This document shows positions 1,056-63,881 of a stretch of DNA of 64,000 bases, piece by piece. Origin of the DNA: Oopsacas minuta. Lineage: Eukaryota > Animalia > Porifera. Under the pieces are notes generated by a model. That model was not told where the DNA came from, made no database searches, and saw only the letters and a program-made list of their open reading frames with translations. The DNA lies in NCBI GenBank assembly GCA_024704765.1, contig JAKMXF010000011.1:665557-729556 (forward strand), read 5' to 3'. Both the position numbers and the translations under genes were made by a program. Within the stretch, counting starts at the first letter, position 1, and the number at the start of each line of letters is the position of its first letter.

Positions 1056-4019
1056 CTAGGATACTTGGTCCATATTTGCTTCTAGGAGTAGAATTCCTGA
1101 TTCCTTTCTTGGAGGCATTCGTTCATTTCCTTTATCTAAGTCTTTCGCTTGATCGAATGATTTTATTTCACAGATTCCTTTCACCTCTAATTTGTGTATA
1201 GCTGTAGAAGATAATGTATAGTGAAACTCAAATAAGACATATCACCTCGAGAAACGGTTAATTCCACTTAATCGTGCAAAATGACCTGCCCTAAGCCCTG
1301 AAGTTACCCTACTGAGCAGACTCTATTGTATTTAAATATTAAAAACAACTGTATTTGGTGGCTATCACTGACAACTATCCAATATCCACTATTATTATAT
1401 TGTATTAATAAAACTCGAATAACCTGATGCTAATCCCTCTTTCCCTTGTTGTAGAATTCCATAAGGTAATTCACCAGCTGGTGTAAGTCCCTTCAGTCTA
1501 ACTACATTCTCACTCTCCTCTCTGTAGAATAAAACGAAAGTAAATTACATGTCTTTCTAAGGTATATCCTGATTAAGTTTTAACCATGGATGGAAGATTT
1601 ACTGTATCTTCTTGGGTTTTGTTCTAGGTCATTTTGAAGTACTCCTCGCTTGGTTGGAGCGAGGATTTCTATAGAACATAAATCCACCATCCATGGTTAC
1701 ATAGGTAATAAGCATATCTGGAGACCATTTTTATCAAAGCACAATACCTGAGAACACTGAAAACTCGTTGTATCTTCCCTATAGCTCTTATCTTGCTCTT
1801 TATTACTTCTTTTCTATCAGGCACGTCAGGTGGAATTTCCTCATCTAATTATCGTTATAATTACGCATAATACTATACAGGTATTGGAAATTTTGTACTT
1901 TGACTTACCAGTACTATCGTCACTACCGTCATCATCCTCTGGACATATCTTTAGGATATTGAGTAACATTTCTGTAACTTTCTCTCCAACGAATGGAAGA
2001 GACCACGTGAATACATCCATGAAGTTAGGGAGCCAGTAGGGGTGAGGAGAGTATTGGAACTGTCGAATATTCATCACATTATTTTCGTACTTCAATACGG
2101 CGGCTATAGGAACTCAATTATTTAAGCTATTCAGTCAATTACTTTTTGAAAGAATCGGGTATACGTACTATAGTATATGAACTACAGATTAGTTGTAAGG
2201 TTTGGTACCGATATATCGGAAATGAAAAATATCGAAAATATCAAAATATCAATTATCGATGACTAACTATACCTTTATTATTAAAAACATCTAGATAATT
2301 GGGAGCTGAGAATATAGTAATTAGAGACGGGAATCCTTTACATTTCTCATACATCTTATAACTACACAAATAATGTTTATTATTCAGAATATACCATGGA
2401 TAAGAACAGTAAATAATAATAGGAAATTACCCAGCATCTTGAGCTTCATGTGCTCTTATGATAGACAGCAGTTGATTCTTTGATAAGAACTCACATACAG
2501 CTTGAAAACTAGTTAAAAAGCGCGAAATTAGAATACTTCTAGAATCGACGAAAATCCTCTATATGCAAACTAGATATTTAACCATGGATGGTGGATTTGG
2601 TTGGAGGGAGGATTTCTATATAACATAATCCACAATTCATTGCTAAGTATATGGGAACCATTTTCGTATGGGACCATGGCTTAACAGGTTACCTGTAGAA
2701 ATAAGAACAACCTCTGACAGTATTATGACTGAAGAATTCTGTCCCACTACTCTCTTCACTGCCGTATTTCTCAAGAGGATCTGACCATAATAAGTCACAC
2801 ATTACACCGCTAGGAGGAATCTCTTGGAACCGATCAATCTAATGCAGATACGAGTAACAATACAGCAATAATACGTATAAGTTGATTTTAAGCAAGGGTA
2901 AGAATCATTATTAGAGCCTAGCAGTTTCAATTCCTTAATTTATTTAATATCCTTATTATATTGTAAAAAGTTGAACCACAACAGATATATTACAGAATAT
3001 TCTACATGTCTTTACTTATACCTTAACGATGTCTTCAAGAGAAGTGATTTCAGGAGATAACCCTCCATGTACACATAAGAACTGATTGTTCATTATAGCA
3101 GCAAGGGGGAGACAGTCAAATGCATCCATACACTCATCATACAGATTTTCTGAATACTTTATACAGCCTATATACACACAAATAATAATACAAAATAGTG
3201 TTATTATATAAAATTATGGGTTTCATATTTTTCGCCAAATGTATCGTGAATTTCAGAGATATTGAGAGGTAATTATTTAGGAGGGAAGATACAGTAGAAC
3301 TCGGATAAGACGTACACTCATAGTACATACTATTTTGACGAAGAGGTACCGTATATGTTATCCGAATTGTAGTGTAATGTATAAAAGTTAAATAATACAC
3401 ATACATTCTTGTTTGAAAGTAAAGTACTCAGTGAGATGTCTACACTCATGATTTCCTCTCAACATGAACAGTGTAGTAGGATACGATGCCTTTAGAGACC
3501 ATAAGTATAATACACACTCTATAGAGAAGTAACCACGATCTACGTAATCTCCCAGGAATAGATAAGTAGTGGATTCAATAGATCCTCCTACTTCAAATAG
3601 TTTGAGGAGGTCAAAGAATTGTCCGTGTACATCTCCACACACTGTAACAGGACGACTACACTCTATCTTCAATAAATTGTCTTCTTTTCTTAGAAGTTCC
3701 TTGCCTTCTCGGATTATCCTGTTATGAATTCGAGAACTCATTAGTAAAATCAATTCATAAGGGGAAAAGATAAGAATTTACCTGAGAGCTGCATCCTCTT
3801 CTATCCGGCCTTCCTGCTTCAAGTGCTCCTTCAATACTTGAGACAATACTTTACCATCTTCTGTATACAGCTGATCCATCTTTAGGAATTCCTTTGCTGG
3901 ATGAGGAATATCTGGAAAAGATTGGAAAATTTAATATATTTTGAAAATTGAATTTCTACAATTTATGTACCTGGTTTCATTCTGCCTTTAGTCTGGGGAA
4001 GATCTTCCTTGTTTGCCAT
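1056..4019 (-). CDS. PPP3C: Calcineurin catalytic subunit A (PP2B), 11 exons
   Basis: Hand-spliced exons: 4019-3971, 3911-3782, 3718-3405, 3167-3022, 2838-2693, 2508-2431, 2361-2273, 2103-1909, 1844-1748, 1521-1424, 1201-1056, all GT-AG. Motifs: [52 protein letters not shown] (CnB binding), [23 protein letters not shown] (CaM binding), [19 protein letters not shown] (autoinhibitory). Confidence 0.97.
1583..1697. mobile_element. MITE family E copy (TIR ACCATGGATGG) in a calcineurin intron; second degraded copy at about 2581-2642
   Basis: ta|accatggatgg...ccatccatggt|ta. The internal tggttggagNgaggatttctataNaacata is shared with the copy at 2581-2642. Confidence 0.65.
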
Positions 4020-4949
4020 AACAATTATGCTAAATAAAACCTCTAACAATTAATAAACTGAGATTCGAATATTTGAGGATAACAACAATAAACCGTGTAC
4101 GAAAAGTCGGATTTTCATATTGGCATGTGCTGAGGTTCGCGAAAATGCGAAAATTGAGGCTAATTTGATAACTTGTGAGATGTTGATTGGACATATTCAA
4201 GATAACAAGTATTTATATTCGGGAACAAGGTAAGATAAATACTCTAATTTTAGAAATAGGACTATCTAAGTAGCAATTCCAATAGTACGTAGATACCACC
4301 ACATAATGCTAACCAATTCCACTAGTTCTTCCGTCATTAACAACTTTCAAACAATAAGAGTTACGTATAATGTGTAAAGATATTGTATGCGAATAATGTA
4401 AACATCTACTAATGCACGTCGATAGGAGTAACGCCATGTGTTTATGTTATATCGTATATTCCGGGGGTATATTTTGGGAACGGCTCCTCATCTTGGTGCT
4501 ATCTGGGGAAATTACAATTTCTGAAGTTATAATCGTAATGCACAGGGGCAGATTCTTATTTATTACATAATCTCTCATACCTTGTTTAGAGATATCGAGT
4601 GGATCTCGCATATTAGCAATCGAATTTTGCAGGATTTTCTTTGCGCTATTACAATGTGCACTTTATGTCCATGAAAATAAGTTACTAATAGGGGAACATC
4701 ACTGTAGAAATGACAGTTATCTGAAGTTTCCAGTTTACACAGTATTAATATTCAGAACCTGGAAAGAGACTATTATCATCGGGTAAAATTCCCAAAATTT
4801 CCCCTGAACAAATGAATTGAGTGACTGCACTGACTATACCATGTAAGGTTCAATTCAATTAATGGCGTAATTATCGTATTATGATAAGTAAAGTGAGTAC
4901 TATATGATAGCATAAATTTAGTGTATGCTATTCTATACGGATTATAATG

Positions 4950-62000: not shown

Positions 62001-63881
62001 ACACTTTCTACGTCCCAGTCTTCTGCCATAATTTATCTTTTAATAATATGAATATTGAATTTAGCCTACTAATAATTCTTTACTGGATATCATTGATACG
62101 TGGATACCTTGGATCGTTTTTCATTCATTAGATCAAATTGCAAGCTTTTTGCTTACAAATCTAGTTATCAATTTGTATTTTTAGATAGAGAATGTTCTTA
62201 TCAACTCAAAAGGACAATATGTACTCTGTGACTTTGGATCAGCTTACATAGGCACGATACAACCTAACGCGGTAATATTTAGTGTATTATCCATGGTTTC
62301 TCTTTGGCAATTAAAATCAATCATTTTTATGAGAAATCAGTGTAGAATTTAAAATTCGAACTTCCTAGGTCCCCTTTGTGTATGAAATTTTGTATTCCTA
62401 GATTATATTATTCTCAATGTCCCTTCAAAGATAATATAATGATACAAAATTCGAAATGCTAATTTCCAAGAAAATACATTGGTGTTTGCCTAGAGCCCAT
62501 TTTGTATTTGAAATAGTTGACCTAGAAATTCGTGAAAAATACTATAAGACTCGCTAATTAGCGAACTCCACACTGTAAATAACTGTACCGTAACATCTCT
62601 ATGCTCTTATTAGGAGAACAGAACTGAAGTTGAGGATGATATAAACAAATACACAACAATGGATTACAGAGCCCCGGAAATGATAAACTTATATTCTGGA
62701 TATGAGATCACTACTAAAGTTGATATATGGGTAATTATAATTAATGCGTACTTAACTATTATAACCTTCTAGAATATTCTTTTCTAAAATTTGAATTTAT
62801 GAGTTCATGTCTACAGGCTTTAGGAGTTTTGCTTTATAAACTTTGCTTCAGAAAAACGCCTTTTGGAGACAGTAAATTTGGAATTTTGAGTGGGAAATTC
62901 TTTATTCCATCCAGCCCAATTTATAGCAAAAATATTCATAATTTGATACGTAAGTTTGTATTATTTATTATTTTATATGTATTTATGTACCAAATTACAG
63001 ATATCCTCCTGAATCCTAATCCAGTATCTCGTCTTGATATTCACCAGGTTCTTAATTCTGTATGTAAATATCTGCGAAAACCACTACCTCCTGGACTTAA
63101 ATTGCAAGTAAGTCACATTACACACATACAGTCAACTCCCGTCATATCGAAATACCCGATTCAAAGTCAGAAATTGTACAAATATTGTCCCAACCTTAAA
63201 AGTAATATATATTTTCATAGGTTATATCGGCTCTGCTTATAACGAAGTGATTATCGCGGTTCCTTGAGCTTCGATATAACGAGAGTTAACTGTATTATTA
63301 TATCTACATGGCTTTACGTTTGAAACTTTACCGTTTAGGATAAAGAAGAGATCGATATTAGACATTCACCAGAAAATCTAATACGTACTTCCAAGCTATC
63401 TACACCATCAAATTCTACTAATCAATCAACTCCTAAAGACAATGCTGCTAAATTGAAACACACATCCATGAGTACCCCCGTATTAACCTCAGTTAAAGCA
63501 AGGTCTAGACCCAGGACAAGCATAGAAATGACTTCTCGCAAAGCTAAGCCGCTAATTTCAACAAATACACCTAAATCTACATTCTTAGCTGTACCAAAAA
63601 CCTATGATGTTAATGATGATGATGACCTTGATCAATTTGGTATGTCTCAATTCGTTCCACATTTGAAAGCTAATTCCGCACAAAACCTCAGGGACGCAAC
63701 TGACATGTTCGGCTTAGAACCTTTCTCTACTGTTTCTGCACAAAAAAGTGGAAGTAAAATCGATTTATTTGGTGCAGTACCCTTCAATGATTTAGTCGTC
63801 GTGCATCATGAAGCTAAACGTAATGAGTCTTATGATATAGGAATACTGAGTGGAGAAGCTGGTGCAAACACCAGAGTATGA
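59024..63881 (+). CDS. AAK1/BMP2K: Numb-associated kinase (AAK1/BMP2K family), about 9 exons
   Basis: [27 protein letters not shown]|[30 protein letters not shown] and [15 protein letters not shown]-terminal DxFGxxPF motifs ([16 protein letters not shown]). Confidence 0.92.
60602..62029 (-). CDS. SAMD8: Sphingomyelin synthase-related protein (SAM + SMS domain), 2 exons, nested in kinase intron 4
   Basis: SAM domain, [29 protein letters not shown] and HEHYSID (SMSr-type). Exons 62029-61348 and 61143-60602. Confidence 0.94.
63129..63292. mobile_element. MITE family A (best-preserved copy), kinase intron
   Basis: ta|cagtcaactcccgtcatatcgaa...ttcgatataacgagagttaactg|ta. Confidence 0.85.

Follow-up and report, generated by a model that had tools for sequence, protein, structure and literature searches.

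Two divergent blocks of co-oriented genes in the glass sponge Oopsacas minuta: a conserved arrangement with an acceptor-like signal ahead of start codons and candidate small operons

Background

A stretch of 64,000 nucleotides (nt) from the genome of the sponge Oopsacas minuta (contig JAKMXF010000011.1 of assembly GCA_024704765.1, positions 665,557 to 729,556), referred to here as the window, carries two long runs of genes that point away from each other, one on the minus strand and the other, apart from a single nested gene, on the plus strand. The locus raises the question of whether such runs are transcribed together, as are the operons that some animals resolve by spliced-leader trans-splicing, or are rows of genes that each have their own promoter. 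Operons of this kind are known in nematodes, flatworms, tunicates, chaetognaths and Hydra, and not in sponges; no report of operons in sponges was found in the literature searched. Spliced-leader trans-splicing itself, which the initial annotation of the window had mentioned for hexactinellids, is documented in this group (PMC7986045, PMC10282587), and in a review of 2021 the hexactinellid sponges stand as a trans-splicing group for which operons had not been reported (PMC7986045). The leader described in the A. vastus genome paper is approximately 37 nt long (PMC10282587). The O. minuta genome paper reports 16,413 genes and is silent on leaders and on gene orientation.

Here, the two blocks were characterized from gene calls, spacers, signals near the start codons, and comparison with related sponges and with a second region of the O. 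minuta genome. We conclude that the two-block structure is real, non-random and evolutionarily conserved, and we tentatively propose that the blocks are made up of arrayed spliced-leader genes, of which at least the closest neighbours are linked by read-through into small operons.

Results

Two co-oriented blocks diverge from one switch region

Exact look-ups of proteins from single-exon ORFs assign the window to contig JAKMXF010000011.1 (1.01 Mb), and its copine is 100% identical to an O. minuta protein recorded as Copine-9-like. The orientation of the genes was taken from NCBI gene calls retrieved around five anchor genes, a source independent of the initial annotation; window positions are record positions minus 665556. 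According to these calls the minus run consists of 11 consecutive annotated genes (1056-27590). The plus run starts at 28393, extends past the window end and, counting the NCBI calls together with two unannotated open reading frames (ORFs), includes at least 15 genes, since three further plus-strand genes lie beyond the window end (a PH protein, a gene of 1251 amino acids (aa) and an Ldh/Mdh gene, all NCBI calls). The ten minus-strand and eleven plus-strand genes of the initial annotation are all on the strands given there, but the minus count had missed the 104-aa gene at 27209-27590, and the plus run, which had been started at 28864, begins earlier and is longer. The plus-strand gene CFAP43 does bound the left block convergently, as had been proposed; it stops at window position 76, so the convergent end spans 77-1055. 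The SAMD8-like gene is indeed the sole strand exception, nested in an intron in the NCBI calls and nested in a relative too; all the other wrong-strand ORFs of at least 100 aa lie antisense inside annotated gene spans, and none of them is called as a gene.

If gene orientation were independent and random, two or fewer switches in 26 adjacencies would have a probability of 5e-6. The odds of 2^-9 and 2^-10 originally given for the two runs are arithmetically right, but ignore multiple testing. Under random orientation, about eight single runs of at least 11 genes are expected in a genome of 16,413 genes, which would favour a chance arrangement picked up because many windows were screened; the expectation for adjacent runs of at least 11 and at least 15 genes is, however, only ~0.001 per genome, and two lineage-specific gains or losses (plexin and SRD5A3, see below) both keep the orientation of the block. 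Chance is thus a very unlikely explanation of the arrangement.

The genes of the minus-strand block are the following:

1056-4019, minus: calcineurin-like Ser/Thr phosphatase, 495 aa, last gene of the block (NCBI call; Pfam Metallophos)
4950-5237, minus: COX6C, 95 aa (NCBI call; TAGC 4 nt 5' of the ATG)
5797-6345, minus: SAP18, 182 aa, single exon (NCBI call; TAGC 16 nt 5' of the ATG)
6969-9296, minus: NADP isocitrate dehydrogenase (IDH), 412 aa (NCBI call)
10445-19161, minus: plexin, 1852 aa (NCBI call; at this position in O. minuta only)
19742-21923, minus: condensin-2 subunit H2 (NCAPH2), 589 aa (TAGC 1 nt 5' of the ATG, retained in relatives)
22262-22597, minus: ATP synthase subunit g, 111 aa (258 nt past the COX6A stop; 293 nt in the relative contig L005)
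22856-23218, minus: COX6A, 120 aa (NCBI call)
23607-25018, minus: 180-aa gene with no confident domain (NCBI call; conserved in relatives)
25503-26435, minus: DnaJ subfamily B-like, 310 aa, single exon (NCBI call)
27209-27590, minus: 104-aa hydrophobic protein, first gene of the block (conserved in relatives; TAGC 11 nt 5' of the ATG)

The two blocks are separated by the divergent spacer:

27591-28392, no strand: divergent switch spacer of 802 nt between the 104-aa and 97-aa genes (915 nt in L005)

The plus-strand block includes, within the window:

28393-28686, plus: 97-aa multi-pass membrane protein, TMEM170-like, unannotated, first gene of the block (conserved ORF)
28864-30864, plus: CHGN-family glycosyltransferase, 666 aa, single exon (TAGC 2 nt 5' of the ATG)
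31192-32604, plus: DNAAF3-like (DUF4470/DUF4471), 470 aa, single exon (NCBI call)
33082-39964, plus: cohesin subunit STAG, 1174 aa (NCBI call)
40538-43944, plus: cyclophilin with an RS-rich tail, 539 aa (end inferred from the last ORF)
45092-48338, plus: BBS9/PTHB1, 853 aa (NCBI call)
48477-49235, plus: NFYA, 252 aa (138 nt past the BBS9 stop, 177 in the relative contig L009; TAGC 1 nt 5' of the ATG)
49641-52971, plus: unconventional myosin, 858 aa (NCBI call)
53574-54431, plus: SRD5A3-like steroid/polyprenol reductase ORF, unannotated, start uncertain (Pfam Steroid_dh, E = 3e-23)
54814-57239, plus: copine, 682 aa, with one intron at 56269-56645 (the intron matches the public protein exactly)
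57901-58617, plus: 238-aa proline-rich protein (NCBI call)
59024-63881, plus: protein kinase, 493 aa, whose long intron hosts SAMD8 (NCBI call)
60602-62029, minus: SAMD8-like (SAM and PAP2_C domains), 407 aa, nested antisense in the kinase gene (also nested in a relative)

Two conserved genes of the window, the 97-aa protein and the SRD5A3-like reductase, are absent from the public annotation. The former shares 65-72% identity with ORFs in two relative contigs, and its match to Pfam TMEM170 is weak (E = 8e-4, below the Pfam cutoff). An orthologue of the latter is found at 8580-9431 of L009. A faint match to BMP2K_C was obtained with the relative's orthologue of the kinase. The genes of the minus block had been described as functionally unrelated, and most of them are; the block is nevertheless not wholly so, because three small subunits of oxidative phosphorylation belong to it (COX6A, ATP synthase g and COX6C), the first two of them adjacent.

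Gene order is conserved in related sponges

The blocks were compared with two ENA assemblies of related sponges, ERZ25072730 (two contigs) and ERZ25071281. Collinear orthologues in the same order and on the same strand were found for 13 genes around the switch and for 8 genes in the right block, the nested antisense SAMD8 included, with protein identities to O. minuta of 52-87%. In ERZ25072730 both halves lie on one 2-Mb contig, ~12 kb apart. The two blocks with one divergent switch, as initially described, are therefore borne out by the gene calls, the probability calculation and synteny alike. One gene differs: O. minuta alone has plexin in the interval from IDH to NCAPH2, where three relative contigs have only ~0.3-1 kb; whether it was gained or lost, plexin has the orientation of the block.

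The spacers themselves are poorly conserved. When all of them were compared with the relatives by BLAST, no conserved promoter-like blocks were detected, and most spacers had no match at all. The only syntenic matches adjoin coding sequence, past the stop codons of NFYA, myosin and the kinase and ahead of the IDH start codon; other matches are non-syntenic, and some of these correspond to a repeated element resembling a miniature inverted-repeat transposable element (MITE). The 150 nt upstream of the annotated IDH start (9297-9447) differ from most spacer DNA in being conserved, at ~69%, in three contigs of the relatives; they may represent an unannotated exon or untranslated region (UTR), and the IDH start may be mis-set. 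The MITE-like repeat, with inverted ends (CAGTCAGGGTCGC ... GCGACCC), occupies ~53278-53431 and a related piece lies at ~25223-25305, that is, in two spacers of the window; it also occurs in non-syntenic spacers of the relatives (L006, ~8711-8790; L007, ~8352-8665), and it explains part of the longer myosin-SRD5A3 spacer of O. minuta.

A second region of the genome carries genes on mixed strands

As a control we used the region around a copine paralogue on O. minuta contig JAKMXF010000311 (L012), which was not selected for its orientation and was met by chance in a homology search. As annotated, the strand order of its genes is + - + + + - - + -, and three of six adjacencies are switches if a CHGN copy is counted as nested in a split methionine synthase model. 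From this one region it follows that the genome is not uniformly built of one-way arrays. In a relative that has diverged to a similar extent (84% identity for the copine paralogue), the gene order of the control is retained equally well; conserved gene order is thus a general property of these genomes.

The split model concerns positions 1-8199 of L012, where methionine synthase appears as two calls (1151 aa, and 158 aa with Met_synt_B12) and the CHGN paralogue lies between them on the opposite strand; this is probably a single gene with a nested gene. At the methionine synthase region of a relative (L013), extra CHGN copies and a hAT transposase are present.

A TAG(C) signal precedes most start codons

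Of 24 genes, 18 have the trinucleotide TAG within the 25 nt 5' of the ATG, compared with 27.5% of control windows located further upstream (p = 2e-6), and 14 have the extended form TAGC, compared with 6.7% of the controls (p = 4e-11). Most start codons thus have the signal 1-23 nt ahead of them, and in the relatives TAG is found at orthologous starts though the flanking DNA differs. The extended TAGC motif can be seen at sites such as 22598-22603 and 48472-48476.

For comparison, introns were reconstructed from the lengths of the public products, and only those of at least 100 nt were used, because some very short "introns" of the public models look like annotation patches. Ordinary intron acceptors are TAG in 22 of these 29 introns. 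In the control region, TAG precedes the ATG at 1 of 6 annotated starts, as against 18 of 24 in the window (Fisher p = 0.016, on a tiny sample), which hints that the pre-ATG TAG and co-orientation go together. Judged from its sequence and position, the signal appears to be a real acceptor-like element and fits the trans-splicing known in hexactinellids; start-codon and promoter prediction in the O. minuta genome should consider this putative pre-ATG acceptor.

Spacers and tight gene pairs

Within the blocks, same-strand spacers measure 138-1148 nt from stop to ATG (median 566 nt), which is denser than the average gene spacing of 2 kb given in the O. minuta genome paper. Seven spacers are shorter than 400 nt and most of the others are of 400-1150 nt. 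Three of the tight ones have a similar length in a relative: 138 nt in O. minuta and 177 in the relative for BBS9-NFYA, 177 and 178 nt for TMEM170-like-CHGN, and 258 and 293 nt for COX6A-ATP synthase g. Since the 3' UTR and poly(A) signal of one gene and the separate promoter and 5' UTR of the next would have to overlap within 138-177 nt, the tight pairs are credible operon candidates.

Only T-rich words, for instance ATTTAT and TCATTT, are enriched after the stop codons, and no k-mer upstream of the starts survives multiple testing (the best, AGTTTA, is found at 9 of 25 genes). The ratio of observed to expected CpG across spacers is heterogeneous (0.3-1.8), with counts too small to mark promoters. 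On the sense strand the spacers have an excess of T over A (skew of -0.09 to -0.10, about six standard errors) of the same sign as that of the introns (-0.055); this is compatible with sense transcription, and UTRs and T-rich signals explain it equally well.

One contig from a more distant, glass-sponge-like species crosses a spacer. This contig, L010 (3343 nt, from run SRR2064712), contains, in one continuous sequence, the tail of myosin, a spacer of 338 nt and a copine ORF of 687 aa that is uninterrupted and has a TAG 2 nt 5' of its ATG. Its identity to O. minuta is 68% for copine and 38% for the myosin tail, and copine directly follows myosin, with no SRD5A3 orthologue between them; the upstream ORF was also considered as SRD5A3, which was ruled out given that it is the myosin tail. 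Because the copine genes of O. minuta and ERZ25072730 contain introns, the uninterrupted ORF suggests that L010 was derived from cDNA.

The divergent switch region

The head-to-head pairing of the 104-aa and TMEM170-like genes, less than 1 kb apart, is kept across species, and the spacer between them aligns across species no better than random, with no conserved element. Inside it, at 27918-28016, there is a GC island of ~100 nt (59% GC versus 36% for the genome) with short palindromes, which is not found in the relatives. Scans of the window for tRNA genes and Rfam families gave no matches, and there is accordingly no small-RNA gene at the switch among these classes.

The A/T skew changes sign approximately midway in the switch spacer, each half being at most two standard errors from zero. 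Together with the divergent geometry, this flip is compatible with a replication origin in the switch region from which forks would proceed in the direction of the genes. However, the introns show A/T skew without G/C skew (-0.004), transcription alone gives the same asymmetry, and the pre-ATG signal and the tight spacers are left unexplained; co-orientation with replication forks is accordingly the least probable of the explanations considered.

Discussion

The reading that we favour, with a confidence that stops short of even, is that spliced-leader genes are arrayed in the blocks and that small operons arise by read-through, at least between the tightest neighbours. The TAG ahead of the start codons would be the acceptor for the glass-sponge spliced leader, and the leader would provide the 5' end of the mRNA, so that there would be no strict need for a promoter directly upstream of each gene. 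A gene located downstream of an active neighbour on the same strand could still be expressed from read-through RNA, whereas inverted genes would face antisense conflict; same-strand arrays would therefore accumulate and last. Most likely, several transcription units follow one another in each block, and the tightest neighbours are probably co-transcribed and then split by 3' end formation and trans-splicing as small operons. The candidate pairs would be BBS9-NFYA, TMEM170-like-CHGN and COX6A-ATP synthase g, and perhaps four more whose spacers are shorter than 400 nt.

The polycistronic interpretation originally put forward for the whole blocks is thus retained in part: the blocks, the switch, the TAG(C) signal and the leader literature agree with it, but the unselected region is mixed and the spacers are no tighter than in that control. 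These and other observations weigh against co-transcription, and some of them are the strength of a somewhat less probable yet serious alternative, in which every gene has an independent promoter, located in its spacer of 140-1150 nt or overlapping the end of the upstream gene, and there is no co-transcription. Under this alternative TAG(C) would be the acceptor of single-gene outrons or a start-site motif, and the arrays would come from a compact genome that tolerates tandem neighbours over head-on ones, or from the slow rearrangement of an ancestral layout.

Several properties of the spacers and of the signal speak against the favoured reading, and some of them agree with independent genes. 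At 566 nt the median spacer is about as long as the two spacers that separate co-oriented genes in the control (585 and 685 nt), so a promoter could fit in most spacers, and in some of them the ratio of observed to expected CpG is ~0.9-1.1, as in the divergent spacer. The words AATAAA and ATTAAA are not enriched in the 20 spacers scanned; none occurs in 10 of these, approximately the frequency expected by chance. A C comes next after the TAG at 13 of the 18 pre-ATG sites, in contrast to the G found after 14 of the 29 intron acceptors, and the pyrimidine tract is not significantly enriched at the pre-ATG sites (0.57 versus 0.54 in controls); since both features are unlike those of intron acceptors, TAG(C) may be a transcription-start motif. 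TAG also precedes the genes that open the two blocks, the 104-aa gene and, in the relatives, the 97-aa gene, and therefore does not discriminate downstream cistrons. In A. vastus, leaders were found on only 4% of long reads (PMC10282587).

The same holds for gene order, gene content and transcripts. Because the mixed-strand order of the control is equally conserved, conserved order is not evidence for operon constraint, and the presence of cilium-specific genes (DNAAF3-like, BBS9) amid housekeeping genes is awkward for one promoter. Exact look-ups of DnaJ, DNAAF3-like, COX6A and SAP18 returned the genome record only and no transcripts, and these four, together with ATP synthase g and CHGN, are in singleton clusters with no run-derived transcripts. 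The L010 contig may be RNA or DNA, and a k-mer contig can fuse overlapping separate transcripts.

Other observations are difficult to reconcile with fully independent genes. The spacers of 138 and 177 nt, with their conserved length, leave no room for separate non-overlapping units; no promoter element, whether shared among the spacers or conserved, was recovered from them by k-mer counts or BLAST; the L010 contig crosses a spacer unbroken; and co-orientation is far above chance.

At the other extreme, the two blocks would be giant polycistrons of the trypanosomatid type, initiated only at 27.6-28.4 kb and transcribed through 11 and at least 15 genes, with the mRNAs released by trans-splicing and polyadenylation. 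The anatomy fits this idea, given the divergent switch, the convergent end at CFAP43, the unrelated genes and the acceptor-like signal before nearly every ORF, and the spacer skew resembles that of the introns. Nothing beyond the anatomy supports whole-block transcription, however, and with its mixed strands the control region is evidence against a trypanosome-like genome. In addition, the switch spacer has no element conserved with the relatives, the spacers could accommodate promoters, the genes have introns and tissue-specific functions are found among them, and known animal operons rarely exceed about eight genes. We consider this possibility improbable, and to the same degree its restricted form, in which a trypanosome-like mode would operate over part of the genome while mixed-strand regions, where TAG is rare, use ordinary promoters. 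Hence the blocks are probably not two giant polycistrons.

Returning to the reading of small operons within spliced-leader arrays, if even the tight pairs were co-transcribed the sponges would join the operon-bearing animals, which would be new for the phylum, and, if true, sponge operons would bear on the repeated versus early origin of trans-splicing and operons in animals.

The arrangement can be compared with several known systems. It resembles trypanosomatid units in its long one-way arrays of unrelated genes bounded by a divergent switch and a convergent one, with an acceptor-like signal ahead of almost all ORFs; in trypanosomatids, however, this organization is genome-wide, whereas in O. 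minuta a mixed-strand region exists, the genes have introns and the initiation zone is only a candidate. Dinoflagellate unidirectional blocks also consist of long same-strand runs with switches in a trans-splicing organism, but they often contain tandem copies in very large genomes, in contrast to the unrelated single-copy animal genes and compact genome described here. The starts of the 104-aa and TMEM170-like genes, 802 nt apart and with a conserved pairing, are reminiscent of animal bidirectional-promoter pairs (less than 1 kb); such a promoter would explain one pair and not 25 co-oriented neighbours, and, unlike the pairing, the sequence of the spacer is not conserved.

Closer parallels are found among animals with trans-splicing. 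Tunicates (Ciona, Oikopleura) use one leader for single genes and operons, and O. minuta shares with them a compact animal genome and what would be a single acceptor type for first and downstream genes; nevertheless, tunicate intercistronic gaps are of ~0 to tens of nt, and the tightest stop-to-ATG gap here is 138 nt. Nematode operons contain 2-8 genes, with ~100 nt from poly(A) site to acceptor and a dedicated SL2 leader, whereas the runs of O. minuta, an architecture known here from the genome sequence, comprise 11 genes and at least 15, with spacers mostly of 400-1100 nt and no second known leader. In other respects the runs are like the spliced-leader operons of nematodes (the C. elegans SL2 type): neighbours on the same strand are unrelated and often mitochondrial or housekeeping genes, the putative acceptor lies a few nt 5' of the downstream ATG, and the stop-to-ATG distances of the tight pairs (138-258 nt) would be plausible for such operons.

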